A DNA stretch of 64,000 nucleotides, taken from contig OX337231.1 of the NCBI GenBank assembly GCA_946965045.2, positions 3,348,001-3,412,000 of the forward strand, given 5' to 3'. Shown one piece after another: positions 7,365 to 61,442 of the stretch. Below the pieces are notes generated by a model that saw only the letters and a list, made by a program, of their open reading frames with translations, was not told where the DNA came from and did not search any database. The DNA comes from Epithemia pelagica (taxonomy: Eukaryota; Protista; Bacillariophyta). The stretch's first letter is position 1. Every line of letters begins with the position of its first letter. The position numbers and the translations under genes were made by a program.

Positions 7365-7867
7365 ATGGAAAATACGGAACGAATCTACACGGCCACGGCC
7401 GATGAACTGAATACCGAAATTGCCAATTATTTGAAAAAGGTAGGAGGATATTAGTTTGTCACGTTGTTGATCGACGGCACAGTTCTGTGCAATGTTCTTG
7501 GGTGGTCGAGGCTGGCCCCCGGAAACCATTGTTTTGTCATGTTGCTTGCGCCCACCCATATTGTTTTGTGTATCGAATTCAATAATAGAAACCCGATGCG
7601 GAATGGAAAGAAATATGCTCGGATTTGTTGCGAACCAAAAAGGATTGGATTGTTCCGGAACGTCGGGTGGCCAAATTTCTCAAACGTCAAAAACAGGGCA
7701 AACCGATTGCAGGAGATGAAGAAGCTTCCGTCATGTCACGTGGCCCCGTCCGTCGCTTCTTTTCCGGCAGTTCGTCGCGCAGCAGTGGAGGGAGTAGCAG
7801 AGATCCAAACGCTCCCGTCGAGTCCAGTGGCCCTTCGCGTCGCTTCTTTCGAAAATTAGGTTGGTGA
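7365..7867 (+). CDS. Small two-exon hypothetical protein, paralog A
   Basis: Exon 1 7365-7439 (MENTERIYTATADELNTEIANYLKK), GT-AG intron 7440-7588, exon 2 7589-7867 (KPDAEWKEICSDLLRTKKDWIVPERRVAKFLK...RRFFRKLGW). Splice positions are conserved in paralog B. Confidence 0.8.
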
Positions 7868-52417: not shown

Positions 52418-53245
52418 CTAATCCTCAAACAATGGGTGAATAGGGAATCCCGGTTCAAATCCTAGCTTGAGATAGATTCGGTTGGTCGATCTAGGATTTG
52501 GGCACACCCAGAACTGAAGATCAAACCTATTTGCATCAGGGTGGTAATAAAAGCTTGAACTTGGTGTTGTCATCCCAAACCAGCTGGTCGCAAAAGCCAC
52601 AAACTGGCTTGAAACCATGTCATGATTTGATGGTAGTGTGATCCAGTCTTCAATATGATGCCGATCCATGAGCGCTCCTGTTACACCAGAGCGATAGAGA
52701 AAACCATCATTGGGAATGTGAAAGTGAACAAACTTGTCAACACGACCTCCTCGAGCGTGACGAACTTCTTTTGTCTCAATCGTGGCCTGGAAAAGAAGAT
52801 TGTCGTGGAAGAATCCTGGCGTTGCCTTCGCAATGACTCCGTACGCATCAGCTGGTCCAGCACCTTGAACCCAATCGTAGGTGGGGATTTGGGTTTGGGG
52901 GGAAGCAACGAGTGACTGGAAGACTGTGTAGAGGTAACCAGCGCTCATTCTTGGACGTAGCTCCTCGTCGATGGTGGACGGCTCATTGGGTTCGTGAAGT
53001 GGTGCCATACAGTGGTAGGCAATCCCATGTTAGCGATACCCATAAAGGAACTCAGCATGCGGTCTTCGGGGGGATAGTCGTCGATAGAACCTCTTGAAAC
53101 GCTCGTAGGCTTCAACCTGCTGTTGTAGTTGCGCTTCGTCTGGAACGAAGGGATTGGCTGACGCATTCAGAAATCTTGTCCCTTGTTCAGGATCTCCTTG
53201 TTTCTCCTCCTCTCCTTCGTTCTCCTCTTCATTTGGATTAGACAT
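52418..53245 (-). pseudogene. Unknown ~275-codon reading frame interrupted by one in-frame TAA
   Basis: Track ORFs 53030-53245 and 52418-53008 are in the same frame, separated only by TAA (53032-53030) plus seven sense codons; N-terminal FLNASANPFVP is PAM2-like. Confidence 0.45.
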
Positions 53246-53735
53246 GCTGCCTGAAACAGAGCCGTAGTAATCTGCGAGATCGATCGCTTAACTGGTAATG
53301 AGTGGTTGCCTGTTGCTGCTGCGATTTGGCCCTCTGAGTCCCCTTCAACCACTTGGTCCACTATTAGAAAGCAGTGCCATACCCATGTAAAATAGCACGG
53401 TATAAAAATTGTGATCTTAACCCTTTCAGCCCGGCACTTTTTTTGGCCCGGTCACTTACCCCCAAGCAGGGGTGAGTCCAGGTCGCATATAAGTCGTACC
53501 TAAAGGTACATTCTCTTTCTCACCCCCTTGGCTCGACCACCCAAATTTGGCGATTTTACGACATTGATACAAATCGCATTTCACCTCAACGCATCCACCA
53601 CGGTGCCAAACAAGTGAGGTCGATTTCATCCGCATTGCAGGTTTTCCAACCACACCCAAGCCCCTCTAAGCTTTACCATACTACCAACGACACTTCTGCT
53701 TACTTGGTGTTGTATTCAATTGTCCATCCACAAGC

Positions 53736-55832
53736 ATGGACAGCCAGCAAAACACCCCATTTCGGAACAACAACAACGAAGGCGGAGATCCATCGACCGC
53801 ATCCGCAACCGGCTCTAGTACATTGCTTCCGTCGTTCCATTCGGTCCACAACCCTACCGACCGTCCTTCCCATGGTCCGGACCTTCTGCAACAGGCCATA
53901 GAAGCCGTCTTCACAGATTGGCATGGGAAGACCGCCCGTCCGTGGCAGATCGACGCCACAAAGCAAGTTCTCCTGCGCCACATTGGCCCTTCTACACCAC
54001 CGTCCATGCTACGTCCTCTCCTCCTTGTTCGTTCGACCGGCGGCGGCAAATCGGCCGTCCGTGACATCGGTGGTATTCTGTGTGGAGGGATCACAGTAAC
54101 AATTGTCCCCTTACTGAGTTTGGCAGCCGACCAAACGTCCAAATTGAAGCACATATCGTTGGCCAACCATCTTTCCAACCGCCTCCAAGTCTTTAATCTT
54201 GATGTTCTTCGTTCCGGTCGACTCAATAACATTCTCCGTCGTCATTTGGAGAATTTACCTAACGACGATCCAGCAAAGAAGAGGATCTTTATATTTACGT
54301 CACCCCAAAAAATCAGCAACGATCCCTCTTGGCAAGCGACCATTGCCCAATGTTGTTCCAATGGAACCTTACGTCTTGTGGCCATCGACGAATGCCATCT
54401 GTTCGCCACTCACGGAATGGAATTCCGTGAAGAATTCGGAGCATTGAGAAAGTGTTTTTTCAAAGTCCTACAAAAAAAAACCAAGGTCCCCATCCCAGTC
54501 ATTTTCATGACTGCCACAGCCTCCCCACCTATGTTGCAAGACTTGTCCAGTCTCACCGGAATCTCCTTCGACTTCTCCAACGATCTAGTTTGGCCTTTCC
54601 ATCATTCAGGAGTAGAGCGACGAAATGTGCTCCTTGACCTTTCATTCAAGGATTCTCCTACTACCCGCATCAAATCCGAGTTAAGGAAGACCTGCCGGCT
54701 GCCGGGTGGTAGGAAATTGATGGTGTATTCAAACTCGCGGAAGGCTATCACCAACTTACACGAGAAGTCTCGTGTGAAGCTTAACCATTTGAATCACCGT
54801 GATGGAATTCAAAAAGATGTTCTGCTTGTACACGGCAATATGTTCCGGGAACAAAAGTTCCACCATACGGACATATTTGTCGGCAAGCCTCTCCTTGACG
54901 AATGCCCAACGACTGGACGGGCTCTACAATTTGACCCTGTTGCGTACTTTGCTACTGCCGGCACGGCAAGTTCAGGTATCGACTGTGGCGAGGTTGATAA
55001 GGTTATTTTCCATGGAATACCTGCAAGCTTACAAGACCTGCTTCAGTGTTCCGGCCGATGTGGCCGAAGTCAGCGTGCAACACCTGCTAACTCTTCCTTC
55101 ACAATCGTCATGTCCCTCAACAGCCTTGTATCTATCATGACCCGTATCTTCATTATACCCAAATATGAAGAATCCAAAAAGGCGTCACAAACCGCAACAA
55201 CCACGGACAACGCCACAAGCAGTCCAGGAACAAAGGTCTCTGCTGCTACTACAATGCCTGCTCATGTCCTTGCTGAGCGCCAATGGCAGAATCTCTTGAG
55301 TGTCCTGTCGTTGCTATGTCTTGATAATGGCAAGTGCATCCATTCGCAATTAGAGTCCATGATGCTCAATCCACACCACCCATCCGTTTGTGATATTCCA
55401 CTTCGTTGCAATGGTGCCTGCTGGCGCTGTCGTGAGAAGCCCATATCTACGGCATTGGACTGTCGCGTTGATATCGAAGCATTGAAGCAATACTTCGTTC
55501 GTATCTTCATCACTGACAAAGTTCGTCCCTCCCAGCTATCCCTTCACAAGGACGTGTTCCTTAACACACTTGTTGATTTCGAAACTGAGGACCGAGAGGG
55601 CAAGAAGAAGAAGGCATTTGGCCGCCGAGTTTTTCGGATTAAAACCAAGGCAACCATAAGACAACGGGCTAAGGCTACCATCATGAAATGCTTCGCCAGT
55701 CGCATTCTGGAGCCGGATGTTGATGGCTTTCAGCTTCGAGTTAAATTGGGGTACGATACCAACGGCAATCCACGTATGAATCTACCTGGGGCATGGGATG
55801 GCTTTGCCATCTTTCCTTCTAAAGACTCGTAA
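53736..55832 (+). CDS. RecQ-like superfamily 2 helicase, transposon-encoded
   Basis: RPWQ (Q motif), STGGGKS (I), IVPLLSLAADQ (Ia), VAIDECH (II), MTATA (III), VYSNSR (IV), SSGID (V), QCSGRCGR (VI), C-terminal Cys cluster C..C..CNGACWRC. Confidence 0.9.
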   Translation: MDSQQNTPFRNNNNEGGDPSTASATGSSTLLPSFHSVHNPTDRPSHGPDLLQQAIEAVFTDWHGKTARPWQIDATKQVLLRHIGPSTPPSMLRPLLLVRSTGGGKSAVRDIGGILCGGITVTIVPLLSLAADQTSKLKHISLANHLSNRLQVFNLDVLRSGRLNNILRRHLENLPNDDPAKKRIFIFTSPQKISNDPSWQATIAQCCSNGTLRLVAIDECHLFATHGMEFREEFGALRKCFFKVLQKKTKVPIPVIFMTATASPPMLQDLSSLTGISFDFSNDLVWPFHHSGVERRNVLLDLSFKDSPTTRIKSELRKTCRLPGGRKLMVYSNSRKAITNLHEKSRVKLNHLNHRDGIQKDVLLVHGNMFREQKFHHTDIFVGKPLLDECPTTGRALQFDPVAYFATAGTASSGIDCGEVDKVIFHGIPASLQDLLQCSGRCGRSQRATPANSSFTIVMSLNSLVSIMTRIFIIPKYEESKKASQTATTTDNATSSPGTKVSAATTMPAHVLAERQWQNLLSVLSLLCLDNGKCIHSQLESMMLNPHHPSVCDIPLRCNGACWRCREKPISTALDCRVDIEALKQYFVRIFITDKVRPSQLSLHKDVFLNTLVDFETEDREGKKKKAFGRRVFRIKTKATIRQRAKATIMKCFASRILEPDVDGFQLRVKLGYDTNGNPRMNLPGAWDGFAIFPSKDS

Positions 55833-55894
55833 TGGTTCCTATACTGATAGGAACTCTCAATTCGTGTATTCAATGAAATAACTATAAAGTATGT

Positions 55895-58800
55895 TTAATG
55901 TAACGATTTCTTGTATAGCTCGAAGAGATCCAACCCTCTATCCAATTTATCACCTAAGGGGGTACCAACATCGTTCCTCGTTGTGAGTGAAAGAGCGTTT
56001 CCATCATCCTCCATTTTTTCAAGTCTTTGGAACAACTGCAGCCGTAGGAAATGGTCTTCCCGCTCTTTCCTTGCTGCTTCCCATTGTCGTAAAGCCATTA
56101 CATTCTTCTTCTCTATTTCTTGTACCGCATGGGCCATAACATCTTTTGCCGCTACTGCATTCATTGGAGCGACCTTCATCCCTGTTACTTTCCCTTTCTC
56201 AATAAGTGGTTCTTCCTCTTTATGTCCTTCTGTACCACCATCCCCTTCATCTCCCCGTTGGTCGTCCACGCTCCTGTTCTCGTCATCTTCAGCGTCGTTG
56301 TCTTCTGCTGAGCCGACACTTGTAGCGTCGTACTCATTTTCGGTACCATCCATCAGTTCTGTCTCTTCGTCAGCTATCATGTCTTGCAACTGTGTTTCTG
56401 CTATCTCGGTCCCCTCCATGTCTTTCTCTGGAAGACGTGCTTCTTCTTCATCTCCATCCATTCCATCATTGTCGTCCTCATCATCCGAGACCAGCAAATC
56501 ACTTGTTTGTGTCCCAAAAAAAGACGTGTCTCCCTCAACTTCCACCACGGCAGACTCGTCATCACTAAAATACGCAAGCCCATCAGCAGAGCCCTCGTTA
56601 TCTTGCTCTTTTATGGCCTCTTCGAGATCAATTGCCGAATTTGCGTTTGTTTCCATAGACTCATTGTCGCTGTTATCTCCTTCCGTGTGTTCCTTTTCCG
56701 TCTGTTCATTTTCCATTGTATCTTTCTGGCTTTTGAACGACTTCATCATCTGTTGTGCCTGTACAACAACATATTGGTGCGTTATGTCGGTTTCCACTTT
56801 GCCGTCTCCGCGATTTCGGATCTTCTTCTTCACTTCAAGGGAGGTTCCATCGAGTGCCCTCCAAAAATGGTTGCCATCAATAACCAAGGTCGCTTCTTTT
56901 CTCGTTTCGTGGCATCTGGCGAGAACAAGGACTTCCGTTACCAGAATGCGGTTAACCTTCGACTTGGGATGCGTGGTTTTCTTGTGTCGATCCCCTGGAT
57001 CAGCAAGTTTATCTTCTGTACTCTTGGTATTCGCTGTTGCATTATCTTGACTTGCGTCGTTCCTTGTGTCATTACCTGTGTCGTTCGTTGCGTCGTCATT
57101 TTGCATTTCCTTCATCTCCTTCTTCCTTTCGGCAAGTTCCGCCTCACCATCAGACCTGGTACGAGTATAGAACTCAACAAAATGCTTTGCTCGTTGGCAT
57201 GCAGTGAGCATTTGGGAGACTCGCACAAATGCGGCCTCGGTTCCATTGTGGCTCATGCCTTTGAAGAAAGGCATGAGCCGCTCCATGATTTGGTCTAACG
57301 CGCTTTCTTTTTGATACGCAGGATTTGGGTTGTTGCTTGTCTTCTGTCGTTTCGTCCGATTCATCCTGATCAACTGCAGAATGGAAATTGGTAATCCATG
57401 GTAATACAATTCGATCAGTCGCAGCTGGATACTGAAAGAGTTGCTCTTTTTGGTTACAAAGAAGATGGGGAGATAGTCAATTACCAATGCCTCCATAGAC
57501 ACGGCGTCGCCACTTTGCTCCGCTTGCAAGAAGGCGAGATATTTTTTGACGATAAGGAGGAAGTTACACAGAAAACGACGTAGCCAATCTTTACTTTCCT
57601 TTGCCTGTTCATTGAGGAAGGACATATACTTATTGGCAATAAAGACTGCCAAGTCTTCTTCCTCTTGGCGATGGACAAACCTGTCGGCTTGTTCTTCTTT
57701 CACCGTTTCTAAAATAAAAACATCAAGCATCATGCGCTCCAGTTCCTCATACACCAGAACTACCAACCGATGACAGAGTCGGTAGCTCTTCGAAACCTCG
57801 TAGGGATCCAGGCGCTTCCATTTCAGTCTGTGCTGCACGCACTGAAGGAAGCCGCCATAAAAAAGACGGTAGATTGCCTCCAGCATATGGAATCGGACAT
57901 GTAGGTCGCCGTTGATGGGGACGACACGATGGATCACACGAGAAATCGCCATTGCCTGACGATACGCTTGCCGGAAAGACGCTGTCTTGGAGTCCACAAT
58001 GGAGAGAATGTTATCAAAAAATTGGAACATTCTCTCAACCGATAATCCATCCCCCACAATGAACAGCCATTTGGATTCCCAGGAATCACCTGGACAAAAA
58101 CTCTCCGTGTGTTCGTCGTATCGTAACAAACCATGTAGGACCATGAAGTCCATGATGATTCCGGTTGCGCCGACTTTGGTAGTTTCATCCAGCACCGACA
58201 CAGGCAGAATCAAGAGTTCTGCAACCGGAGGGACATAACGCCATGTACGGACAACACGAGATTGGAATTGTCGGGCAATTTCGAATATGTTGCTGTCCTT
58301 GTTTTTTCTGAGCCCGTTGAAAGCGGCGTTGATGCGTCGTCTCGAACGGCAATTAGAGAAGGCCTTGGGCTGTAGAGTGTAATCCACATCAAGACCTTTA
58401 CGCCGTTTCACTGACAAGAACCGTTTAAGATTGTGTAATGTATTGCAACATGCAACCATGTTCACAAAAACAGAGACTCGTTGGCCAGAAAGGTCAAAGG
58501 GGTTGCCATTCTTCTCTAAGTCGGTGTCATAGGTACCACGGAAGACAGAAACAATATCACTGATGAAACTGAAAGACTTGGACTTCTCAAACGCGGGCAT
58601 TTGGTAAGGTGCCGGAATAGCTTGCCTTAGGAACGTGAGTTTAGGCCGTTCCAAATATGAGTATACCCACTCTGGAAACTTGGCTATATACATAGCCATG
58701 ACAAATCGCGCTGTTACCCGTGTAAAGATGCAGCTTTGACCGCTCTGGAATTGTAGGCGTCTACCGTCTTGGAGGTTGTCAAAGACACAAAGCAAGTTGC

Positions 58801-61093
58801 TGACTTTCCGAATTGATCTTTTAACTTTGGCATCGTAGGTCATGATCCATTCCTCAACTCTACGCTCCATCGTCCGCTTGGAGACGGATATACCGAACCA
58901 AACAGGGAGTTGTGTGGCCAGCATTGAATGCCCACACGCATATTGAGCCAATGCAAAGATCATGGCGAATGGCACGAACATGTGATTATTGTGCTTTCGT
59001 GCTCTTGCGACAAATTGGAAAAACACGTCAAGAGAATAACGAAGTCGTAGAAATCCTCGTTGTTTCTTTGGAGCCAATTCAAGTTTCTTGTCATAGCCAC
59101 TGAACCCCATTAATGCATTGAATTGACGTGGTAAGACACGCTCAAATTCAGCAGCAAGATGTCGTGTTTCGGATTCAGAGAGGAATTTCTCGAAGATGTT
59201 GTTAAATCTACCGAAACAATCTTCGAGCCTCTCCTGAATCCGCGAATCGACGCGTTTGCAGAACTTCTTCACAACCGGAACATCAACAATAGGGGGGGGA
59301 ATCAGAGGTTGTCTTTGAGCATCTTTGACGGCCACAGCTAGTGCCTCTTTGGATTCTGCAGCTTTTTCTTCCGCACACTGTTTGTTCTCAAGGCGCTCCC
59401 ATACACTTTTCATCTCCGCCATCATGAATCTATCTCCGTGACTTTCTTGAATAGCACGATGGAACAAGGTAAGTCGGTCGTCTCCACTTGTCTTTAGACG
59501 CTTAAAAACTTCCAACCAACTCCTTTCTGGGTGGTAGTCTGCTTGCATGAAAAGCCCCTCAGGGTAGTGAAAAACCTCGAACCATGACAGTAACTGTTGA
59601 ATACACTGTTGAGGAGGGAATGCAAGGTTGCAATCTATCGCTGAAAAGATAGGAAATTTCATTTCAATACCAATTTGGGTTCGTTCCACAAGAGTTTCAG
59701 CTAGCTGCTTCATCGGATGCTCTCCCTCAACCTTGTCTCTGTGTGGATTTTGATGGACCCAGCCGACGAGCTGTTTATATGGTTTTCCTTGACACAAAAC
59801 AGTCGGGATGAATTCCGATTGCAATGTGTCCCGCCAAACTTTCAACCAACGCTTTCCGTATCGCGGCGGAAGGATGGTCTCGTCAAAAAAGAGTACGACA
59901 GGGGTGTTGGGTTTCAGAAACCATACATCTTCCAACAGAAGAGTCCTGAGAGCAAATGATGTAACAACATGAATGGCGTGGGTTCCGGTAGGTGACGACG
60001 GTGAGGGTATAGGCGTGGCATCGGAAAGAGTGGACGATACCGCTGATTGTTCGCTGATTGATTTCCGCTTTTTGGATTGAGGTTGGTATCGTTGTTGTTT
60101 GGATTTGCCGTTTGAGGATCTAGTGACACCAGATGTGTAGTTTTTGGCCTTCCTCATGAGCTGTGAGCAGTTGTTGGAGGCAAGGGTAAGTTTTGACCGA
60201 GTTGTAGTAGCGGTTGGAGAAACAACAATCAGAGGAGGATGTAGCATGGCGGAGTTGCCAGGATTGGCACATGCAAAGGGAGGTTGGCGTCGCAAAGGAA
60301 GGAGATAGGCTCCTTCTTTCACATTCTTCACTCGTCCGGTGAGATGGGCATAGGTTGGAGAAGGCTTTGTAGCGGTAGGTGCTTGGATTGGGGTTGGAGA
60401 TGGATCGTTAGTAGTAGGTGCTGTCGTCGGCTCCTGGGTTGAGGCCGATGGAGCGACGGCAGTAGGGACAGTATACTCGGTATTTGGGGCATCCTCTGGT
60501 TGTTCTACACCTGGCGATTGTGCCGACAGTTGTAGAGTGGAGAGAGGCTTGGGAGGGGACGATTGAGTCCCAAATTCCATCTCGCCAAACGAATTTTTCC
60601 TGTGCCACAATTGGAACGAAAGAGATGAGACACCCCTTGTAGTTGGGTTGTGAGTCTGTGCTTCTTCATCGACTTCGTTTCCTGACGGACGATGACCAGA
60701 ATCGTTAGAGGCCAAGGGAGGGAAGGCAACCATTTCGACACGGCGAGGAGGCTGAGTTCGGTCAGAGGCAAGAGTGGATAAGGAACTGGCCGCAGCGCTG
60801 TCAAGAAAGGTAGATGGTTCCGACCTGCCAACATTGGATGATTGTTGTTGTTGTGGCTGCCGACTGGCCAAGGGGGTTTCGTAGGGAACGTTGGCACCAA
60901 TGGCAACGGAGGAAGCATGGCGAAAGGACTGAATACCGGGTGTAGAGGACGAACGGGCATGGGACGCAGGGGTGCTGTTTGTTTTGGCGATGCCTGCAGA
61001 TGCAACCGATTGTAAGGATCCCATTTGAGCATCAAAGGATTCTCGGGCTTGCTTCTGAGACAGCTTCTGACGTTTGTGGGAAGAAGAAGACAT
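55895..61093 (-). CDS. Academ-type transposase-like protein, 1732 aa
   Basis: CVFDNLQ, FIVGDGLS, PINGDLHVRFH, ALDQIMERL resemble the DN / GD / GxxH / DxxxE motifs of Academ (DUF6589-like) transposases; disordered S/P/T N-terminus and acidic C-terminus; lies within the TIRs. Confidence 0.75.
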   Translation of the reverse strand: MSSSSHKRQKLSQKQARESFDAQMGSLQSVASAGIAKTNSTPASHARSSSTPGIQSFRHASSVAIGANVPYETPLASRQPQQQQSSNVGRSEPSTFLDSAAASSLSTLASDRTQPPRRVEMVAFPPLASNDSGHRPSGNEVDEEAQTHNPTTRGVSSLSFQLWHRKNSFGEMEFGTQSSPPKPLSTLQLSAQSPGVEQPEDAPNTEYTVPTAVAPSASTQEPTTAPTTNDPSPTPIQAPTATKPSPTYAHLTGRVKNVKEGAYLLPLRRQPPFACANPGNSAMLHPPLIVVSPTATTTRSKLTLASNNCSQLMRKAKNYTSGVTRSSNGKSKQQRYQPQSKKRKSISEQSAVSSTLSDATPIPSPSSPTGTHAIHVVTSFALRTLLLEDVWFLKPNTPVVLFFDETILPPRYGKRWLKVWRDTLQSEFIPTVLCQGKPYKQLVGWVHQNPHRDKVEGEHPMKQLAETLVERTQIGIEMKFPIFSAIDCNLAFPPQQCIQQLLSWFEVFHYPEGLFMQADYHPERSWLEVFKRLKTSGDDRLTLFHRAIQESHGDRFMMAEMKSVWERLENKQCAEEKAAESKEALAVAVKDAQRQPLIPPPIVDVPVVKKFCKRVDSRIQERLEDCFGRFNNIFEKFLSESETRHLAAEFERVLPRQFNALMGFSGYDKKLELAPKKQRGFLRLRYSLDVFFQFVARARKHNNHMFVPFAMIFALAQYACGHSMLATQLPVWFGISVSKRTMERRVEEWIMTYDAKVKRSIRKVSNLLCVFDNLQDGRRLQFQSGQSCIFTRVTARFVMAMYIAKFPEWVYSYLERPKLTFLRQAIPAPYQMPAFEKSKSFSFISDIVSVFRGTYDTDLEKNGNPFDLSGQRVSVFVNMVACCNTLHNLKRFLSVKRRKGLDVDYTLQPKAFSNCRSRRRINAAFNGLRKNKDSNIFEIARQFQSRVVRTWRYVPPVAELLILPVSVLDETTKVGATGIIMDFMVLHGLLRYDEHTESFCPGDSWESKWLFIVGDGLSVERMFQFFDNILSIVDSKTASFRQAYRQAMAISRVIHRVVPINGDLHVRFHMLEAIYRLFYGGFLQCVQHRLKWKRLDPYEVSKSYRLCHRLVVLVYEELERMMLDVFILETVKEEQADRFVHRQEEEDLAVFIANKYMSFLNEQAKESKDWLRRFLCNFLLIVKKYLAFLQAEQSGDAVSMEALVIDYLPIFFVTKKSNSFSIQLRLIELYYHGLPISILQLIRMNRTKRQKTSNNPNPAYQKESALDQIMERLMPFFKGMSHNGTEAAFVRVSQMLTACQRAKHFVEFYTRTRSDGEAELAERKKEMKEMQNDDATNDTGNDTRNDASQDNATANTKSTEDKLADPGDRHKKTTHPKSKVNRILVTEVLVLARCHETRKEATLVIDGNHFWRALDGTSLEVKKKIRNRGDGKVETDITHQYVVVQAQQMMKSFKSQKDTMENEQTEKEHTEGDNSDNESMETNANSAIDLEEAIKEQDNEGSADGLAYFSDDESAVVEVEGDTSFFGTQTSDLLVSDDEDDNDGMDGDEEEARLPEKDMEGTEIAETQLQDMIADEETELMDGTENEYDATSVGSAEDNDAEDDENRSVDDQRGDEGDGGTEGHKEEEPLIEKGKVTGMKVAPMNAVAAKDVMAHAVQEIEKKNVMALRQWEAARKEREDHFLRLQLFQRLEKMEDDGNALSLTTRNDVGTPLGDKLDRGLDLFELYKKSLH

Positions 61094-61442
61094 GTTGTAG
61101 GTCGTTTGGATACCACTGCACCTCCACCACCGTGATGGATGTGTGGAGGTAGAATGAAATTTGTATCAATGTCGAGAGCGGCCAGGTCGAGCCAAGGGGG
61201 TGAGAAGGAGAAAGCACATCGTGCTTTCAGACACGCGGGACTGGACTCACCCCTGCTTGGGGGTACGCTCCATTTAGAATAAATAGATCTTCTGCTACAA
61301 CAGGGTATTACGTACTCTACTCCTATTCTATTGCACATTAGCGGTAGTAGCTAAGAGTATCCTTCAAGTTTGCGCCTACCGGTAGAATTGAAATGACCAA
61401 CGAAAACCAGCAAAGGAGTCCTTCTTACTGGTAGGTATAGAT

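Follow-up and report, generated by a model that had tools for sequence, protein, structure and literature searches.

Contig OX337231.1 of the Epithemia pelagica genome assembly (GCA_946965045.2) was analysed over 64,000 nucleotides (positions 3,348,001 to 3,412,000 of the forward strand), a stretch referred to here as the window. At positions 53457-61265 of the window lies an element of 7,809 bp, whose terminal inverted repeats (TIRs) enclose two intact, convergent open reading frames (ORFs). One encodes a RecQ-like helicase of superfamily 2 (SF2) and the other a large protein that we read as a transposase (Table 1). The two genes read inward, one from each end, and conserved subterminal sequence spans about 150 bp at either end. 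A first-pass annotation, made from the letters of the DNA, had described perfect TIRs of 25 bp, inverted repetition reaching about 150 bp when imperfect blocks are included, and two uninterrupted ORFs 62 bp apart; all of these were found again, intact and in the same places. The 25-bp TIR has no further match in the window at up to three mismatches, where the chance expectation is 0. The remaining ORFs of at least 100 aa in the element are alternative-frame overlaps of the two long ones, and the GC content of both long ORFs resembles that of the flanks. A promoter and terminator scan of the 62-bp spacer was empty, but used bacterial models, which are irrelevant to a eukaryote. We put the probability that this locus is an intact, autonomous AcademH-type DNA transposon, very recently mobile, at roughly 0.82.

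Table 1. Features of the element and its immediate flanks (positions in the window; residue numbers refer to the encoded proteins).
Feature	Position	Strand	Remarks
TTAA plus 36-bp terminal fragment of a piggyBac-like transposon	53417-53456	-	The AcademH element is inserted there
Left flank 9-mer CCGGTCACT (reverse complement AGTGACCGG)	53448-53456		Half of the site 2 duplication; its twin flanks the copy on ctg1351l
Left (helicase-side) perfect TIR, 25 bp	53457-53481	+	Starts TACCCCCAAGC
Left subterminal region	53457-53605	+	Terminal TACCCCC..GGGG.GAG; CACCCCC at ~65 bp; TTGATACAAA at ~115 bp; CACCACGG at ~145 bp
Imperfect inverted block 1	53506-53538 / 61185-61217		91% complementary
Imperfect inverted block 2	53559-53605 / 61128-61174		85% complementary
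RecQ-like SF2 helicase ORF, 698 aa	53736-55832	+	
Helicase motifs			Walker A K105; DECH 218-221; motif VI Q437-R444; Cys 534/558/562/565
Spacer between the two convergent stop codons, 62 bp	55833-55894		
Transposase ORF, 1732 aa	55895-61093	-	Pfam DUF6589 at residues 958-1230
Conserved transposase core, residues 640-1400	56894-59176	-	Predicted RNase H-like fold with alpha-helical insertion
Candidate catalytic residue D772	58778-58780	-	
Candidate catalytic residue D1015	58049-58051	-	
Candidate catalytic residue E1271	57281-57283	-	
Right subterminal inverted-repeat region, transposase side	61128-61265	-	Ends in the perfect 25-bp TIR
Right (transposase-side) perfect TIR, 25 bp	61241-61265		
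Right flank 9-mer CGCTCCATT (reverse complement AATGGAGCG)	61266-61274		Half of the site 1 duplication; its twin flanks the other copy; single in empty allele L012

The element belongs to a group of diverged families. Its close homologues are all found in the ENA assembly that contains the window, where 11 transposase and 17 helicase clusters share 54-65% amino-acid identity. At four loci (L001-L004), each with a transposase followed by a convergent helicase, the terminus TACCCCC is common to all, and exact target-site duplications (TSDs) of 10, 9, 9 and 10 bp enclose the copies. The recurrence of the TIRs around homologues, which the first-pass annotation had left as a point to check, is borne out by this shared terminus and its 9-10-bp duplications. 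The duplicated sequences vary and show no TTAA, and the element termini are 5'-TA..TA-3'. We considered whether the terminal TA is itself a TA target duplication and rejected this, since the sister copies show their 9-10-bp duplications outside the TA. Every full-length copy that was examined (L001-L006, L009 and L010) has a convergent helicase beside its transposase. When the ends of the diverged families are aligned, four common blocks appear within 150 bp, and the subterminal ones at about 65 bp (CACCCCC) and about 115 bp (TTGATACAAA) are candidate transposase-binding sites. Read words are 15-70 times deeper at the termini than in the flank, which means that many copies share these ends. 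A 743-bp non-autonomous derivative (L004 7348-8090) retains the family termini and subterminal blocks within a 10-bp TSD (AGTAGTCCTC) and lies 67 bp from another full-length copy. The outermost 20 bp of the window element (53457-53476) contain a small palindrome, CCCC and GGGG separated by 5-6 bases, that could form a short hairpin and is kept in all of the diverged families and in the non-autonomous copy. It might conceivably be relevant to the helicase.

A point absent from the first-pass annotation is that the window copy has no TSD. A second copy on another contig (ctg1351l; L006) is identical to it at 7809 of 7809 bp. If both copies are oriented with the transposase on the plus strand, the order is AATGGAGCG / element / AGTGACCGG in the window and AGTGACCGG / element / AATGGAGCG in L006. 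The window copy therefore lacks a TSD because the two copies carry each other's flanks. Contigs of the alternate haplotype were reached through 90% clusters of the flank proteins; an exact look-up of a 196-aa flank protein returned its own contig only. On one of them (L012), the window's transposase-side flank is joined to the far flank of the other copy through a single AATGGAGCG, and another (L013) joins the other two flanks without the element. Reconstructed in this way, both insertions made 9-bp duplications. Because both sites are empty on alternate-haplotype contigs, both insertions are hemizygous and recent. The identity of the two copies and their shared absence from the alternate haplotype indicate that the element moved very recently, and the earlier description of it as potentially active is likewise supported by two hemizygous copies that are 100% identical.

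These comparisons also bear on whether the locus is a transposon at all. Two host genes that are not mobile, a RecQ paralogue and a domesticated transposase, would equally be intact and would equally resemble their flanks in GC content. However, the ORFs are bounded by TIRs and TSDs, the family comprises many diverged copies, each of which keeps the two genes within its repeats, as well as a non-autonomous derivative, and a second, identical copy stands at an unrelated locus. The insertion is absent from the other haplotype, and these empty alleles refute the host-gene reading, to which we assign a negligible probability.

The site labelled 2 in Table 1 falls within a piggyBac-like transposon, 27-36 bp from its end, and the AcademH insertion splits that transposon. 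An orphan end of it is left in the window (53421-53456), and the rest adjoins the other copy on ctg1351l. The piggyBac-like transposon measures about 3.9 kb (L006 5974-9828), with a TTAA target, a 16-bp TIR (CCCTTTCAGCCCGGCA) and a DDE_Tnp_1_7 gene. It is absent from L013 and is therefore also a hemizygous, recent insertion. Reads also show an uninterrupted site 2, although these could derive from other piggyBac copies.

Compared with the empty haplotype, the two occupied contigs have traded flanks precisely at the element, and this swap reflects either real recombination between copies or an assembly switch within an exact repeat. We give somewhat better than even odds to a switch inside the 7.8-kb repeat with no real rearrangement. 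Copies that are identical at every base are the hardest case for an assembler, the unswapped order is kept on the alternate-haplotype contigs, and the body that belongs to the window's 36-bp orphan piggyBac end lies on the other contig. However, both contigs extend far beyond the element on both sides, so that a reciprocal misjoin in two contigs would be needed, and the observed arrangement is just what ectopic recombination between identical 7.8-kb repeats would produce. A real swap, in which two identical, just-transposed AcademH copies recombined ectopically and left a heterozygous reciprocal exchange between two chromosome regions, is a serious possibility that we place a little short of even odds. 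If true, the exchange would be kept at base-pair resolution beside the unrearranged haplotype in the same diatom assembly. Insertion through hybrid ends was also considered as a cause of the swap and was rejected, since it would require a third duplicated sequence besides the two reciprocal 9-mers, which are the only ones present.

The 1732-aa protein has a single Pfam match, DUF6589, at 29.5 bits against a cut-off of 27; the same scan found no THAP, XPG or other Pfam domain in it. Eight paralogues were used to build a profile of the core (residues 640-1400), which retrieved 678 proteins at E <0.001 among 1.84 billion representatives, and the relatives scanned with Pfam reach up to 77 bits on DUF6589. 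A word-indexed search with the deep transposase profile returned 14 matches, three of them short fragments from other samples and the rest from the same assembly. Non-diatom relatives are 22-30% identical, and in an alignment extending down to that level D772-N773, E970, D1015, G1062, H1065, D1267 and E1271 are invariant wherever covered. The motifs that the first-pass annotation had picked out as Academ-type (DN, GD, GxxH and DxxxE) are thus 100% conserved down to 22% identity.

Modelled with AlphaFold (predicted local distance difference test, pLDDT, 83; predicted template-modelling score, pTM, 0.80), the core is RNase H-like, which together with the DUF6589 match gives the large ORF the kind of fold expected of it. 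In the model D772 lies on the first strand, D1015 directly past the fourth, and E1271 on a helix that follows a helical insertion of about 180 residues. Foldseek gave no significant match of the whole core to the PDB, while an exhaustive structural aligner placed the P element transposase first among solved structures (Z 9.0, 361 residues aligned) and Hermes second (Z 8.1), followed by retroviral integrase cores (Z ~6), Tn5, RAG1 and Sleeping Beauty. In a comparison with predicted structures, a cnidarian DUF6589 cluster ranked first (template-modelling scores 0.60/0.73), and next came another cnidarian cluster, without a family, and a Mucoromycota cluster. By language-model features, DUF6589 clusters of Basidiomycota and Cnidaria account for 28 of 30 matches, and a Mucoromycota cluster without a family for the other two. 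The protein is thus predicted, from its modelled fold, to be a transposase of the RNase H-like DDE type, with a putatively catalytic acidic triad (D772/D1015/E1271) in canonical positions. The P element and the hAT transposon Hermes have the same RNase H-like core with an all-helical insertion before the catalytic E, but similarity to the window protein is not found at the sequence level. The window element also has no hAT dimerisation or THAP domain, and it carries a helicase gene, which P and hAT do not.

The 698-aa protein matches DEAD and Helicase_C in Pfam, with no match to the RecQ zinc-binding domain PF16124. RecQ-family models were matched only well under their thresholds (NCBIfam RecQ_fam, 72 bits against a cut-off of 219.8). 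Nevertheless, all 36 sequence matches to solved structures are RecQ-family proteins (RECQ1, BLM, bacterial RecQ, RECQ5 and WRN). The predicted structure (pLDDT 85) fits RecQ catalytic cores over about 520-670 alignment columns (E ~5e-19), and every fold match listed to a solved structure is a RecQ-family helicase. The Walker A motif, the DECH box and motif VI are conserved, as are four cysteines located where RecQ has its zinc site. By these motifs and matches, the protein has a complete RecQ-type catalytic core, in keeping with the RecQ-like SF2 helicase named in the first-pass annotation, and it is far from true RecQs, which are about 24% identical to it. In a tree with long branches, from which the host's own RecQs were left out and in which the RecQ sample is mostly bacterial, all element-linked helicases split from the RecQs on a branch with 100% support, and their group includes the partners of very distant transposases. 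The helicase is multicopy, is absent from the alternate haplotype, and always lies inside TIRs beside a transposase. It is not a host RecQ at a syntenic locus, an outcome that the first-pass annotation had named as one that would speak against its reading.

Assignment to a family depends on how these features compare with those of known transposons. AcademH is described as the helicase-encoding lineage of the Academ superfamily (Kojima 2020, Mob DNA 11:15, cited in PMC10045372 and PMC10799480), and the TSDs reported are of 9-10 bp for AcademH and 3-4 bp for AcademX (PMC10045372). The window element resembles AcademH in its TIR-bounded structure, its large DDE transposase, its separate RecQ-like SF2 helicase, its family's 9-10-bp TSDs and its low to moderate copy number. 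Moreover, the taxon distribution of the DUF6589 relatives matches the reported hosts of Academ, namely Basidiomycota, Cnidaria and Mucoromycota. It differs in that its host is a plastid-bearing protist (a probable diatom), whereas AcademH is known from animals and fungi, and in that a distant metagenomic relative has an 8-bp TSD. AcademX presumably shares the transposase superfamily, but it has shorter TSDs and an XPG nuclease where the window element has a helicase. Helitrons are eukaryotic transposons that likewise bring their own helicase. Their HUH Rep is joined to an SF1 helicase of the PIF1 type, and they lack TIRs and TSDs; the window element, in contrast, combines TIRs and TSDs with a DDE enzyme and a RecQ-like helicase of SF2.

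Kolobok deserves separate mention, since it includes lineages with RecQ helicases and is known from a diatom (PMC9587614). A helicase-bearing Kolobok, of the KolobokH type or the red-algal Kolobok-1_CCri type, would likewise combine a DDE transposase with a RecQ-type helicase, which the red-algal family encodes on the complementary strand, and the fold of the window transposase resembles those of P and hAT, which are relatives of Kolobok. However, Kolobok makes TTAA-specific 4-bp TSDs and has 5'-RR..YY-3' termini and a shared C/DxxH motif (PMC9587614), and none of these is found in the window element. Its termini are TA..TA, the residue three before the invariant histidine is an invariant glycine (G1062-x-x-H1065) instead of C or D, and no THAP or further Pfam domain was found in its transposase. 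The 9-10-bp TSDs, compared with the TTAA duplications of Kolobok, exclude that family for practical purposes, and we consider it very improbable.

The AcademH call of the first-pass annotation is thus supported by the helicase, the TIRs and the family's 9-10-bp TSDs, while the Academ identity of the transposase is something that we infer from its DUF6589 match. Several points weigh against it. The DUF6589 score barely exceeds its cut-off, and a literature search on DUF6589 and PF20231 gave no link to Academ. Membership in AcademH is therefore probable and no more, being judged from the architecture, the length of the duplications and the taxa in which DUF6589 relatives occur. Recent movement is read indirectly, from the comparison of copies and alleles, and the role given to the helicase is purely conjectural. 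Given a marginal DUF6589 match, relatives outside the diatoms that are 22-30% identical, and an Academ link drawn only from taxon distribution and TSD length, the element might instead represent a separate, undescribed superfamily-level lineage of DUF6589-type transposons that is AcademH-like in architecture only. We regard this as unlikely. Relatives found with the profile reach 77 bits on DUF6589, and P0223 carries, and P0236 is paired with, a helicase; the nearest clusters are from Basidiomycota, Cnidaria and Mucoromycota, where Academ is reported; and the TSD length fits AcademH.

In the mechanism that we propose, the transposase would bind the conserved terminal blocks and cut the element out, and the DDE enzyme would then join the excised element to target DNA with a 9-10-bp stagger. 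The helicase may assist, most likely by acting on the DNA ends or the target, which it could open or remodel, or on the course of repair.

Relatives from other samples extend this picture. A distant AcademH-like element of 7,363 bp is present on two metagenome contigs (L009 9636-16998; the same element in L010). Its transposase core is only about 23% identical, a convergent helicase is present, and a perfect 25-bp TIR, which starts CACACTG and so differs from that of the window element, lies within an 8-bp TSD (ACTTACTC). Its neighbours are eukaryotic, a chitin synthase with a cytochrome b5 domain and a kinase that binds cyclic nucleotide monophosphates. On another contig (L008 7979-13012) DUF6589 (77 bits), DEAD and Helicase_C all lie in one ORF of 1677 aa, a fused transposase-helicase variant, and no clear TIRs were found around that ORF. 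The relative P0223 has a DUF6589 match plus a helicase, the metagenome relative P0236 is paired with a helicase, and P0181 is the sole gene on its contig. None of the relatives scanned with Pfam has an XPG domain. As distant relatives also pair the transposase with a helicase, the pairing is old and not confined to the genome of the window. These metagenome and transcriptome relatives suggest that AcademH-like elements also occur in other marine protists.

The surroundings of the element hold eukaryotic genes together with copia, gypsy and piggyBac-like elements. The alternate haplotype has an insertion of about 8.4 kb (L013 11486-19927) that is absent from the window haplotype; it encodes a 2027-aa protein resembling those of long interspersed nuclear elements, with an endonuclease/exonuclease/phosphatase domain, and sits between a rhamnosyltransferase-like gene and a VIPP1-like gene. 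A VIPP1/PspA-like gene in L005 (22634-22999), apparently split into two ORFs, presumably by an intron, has an N-terminal signal peptide ending in SVAFAP, which we take to resemble the ASAFAP plastid-targeting motif of diatoms and related heterokonts. In a sequencing run from another sample with the same organism label (X4), the flank is present with 5 differences in 670 bases, as are TIR-like pieces (window 52700-53774). Nothing in that run matches the element interior at 95% identity or more, which may reflect a strain difference or thin data.

Our literature search found no paper linking Academ to diatoms or stramenopiles. The element is a new host record of AcademH and not a new kind of element; what is new here is its swapped-flank, nested, hemizygous configuration. 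With this record, an Academ lineage that carries a helicase, has been little studied and is known from animals and fungi would gain a photosynthetic stramenopile as host. With identical hemizygous copies, intact genes and non-autonomous derivatives, the family looks alive. The swapped flanks represent either an assembly error to be corrected or a transposon-mediated chromosome rearrangement. The element is also a candidate natural insertion mutagen for diatom genetics, and it offers a tractable case in which to learn what a RecQ-like helicase does for a DDE transposase.

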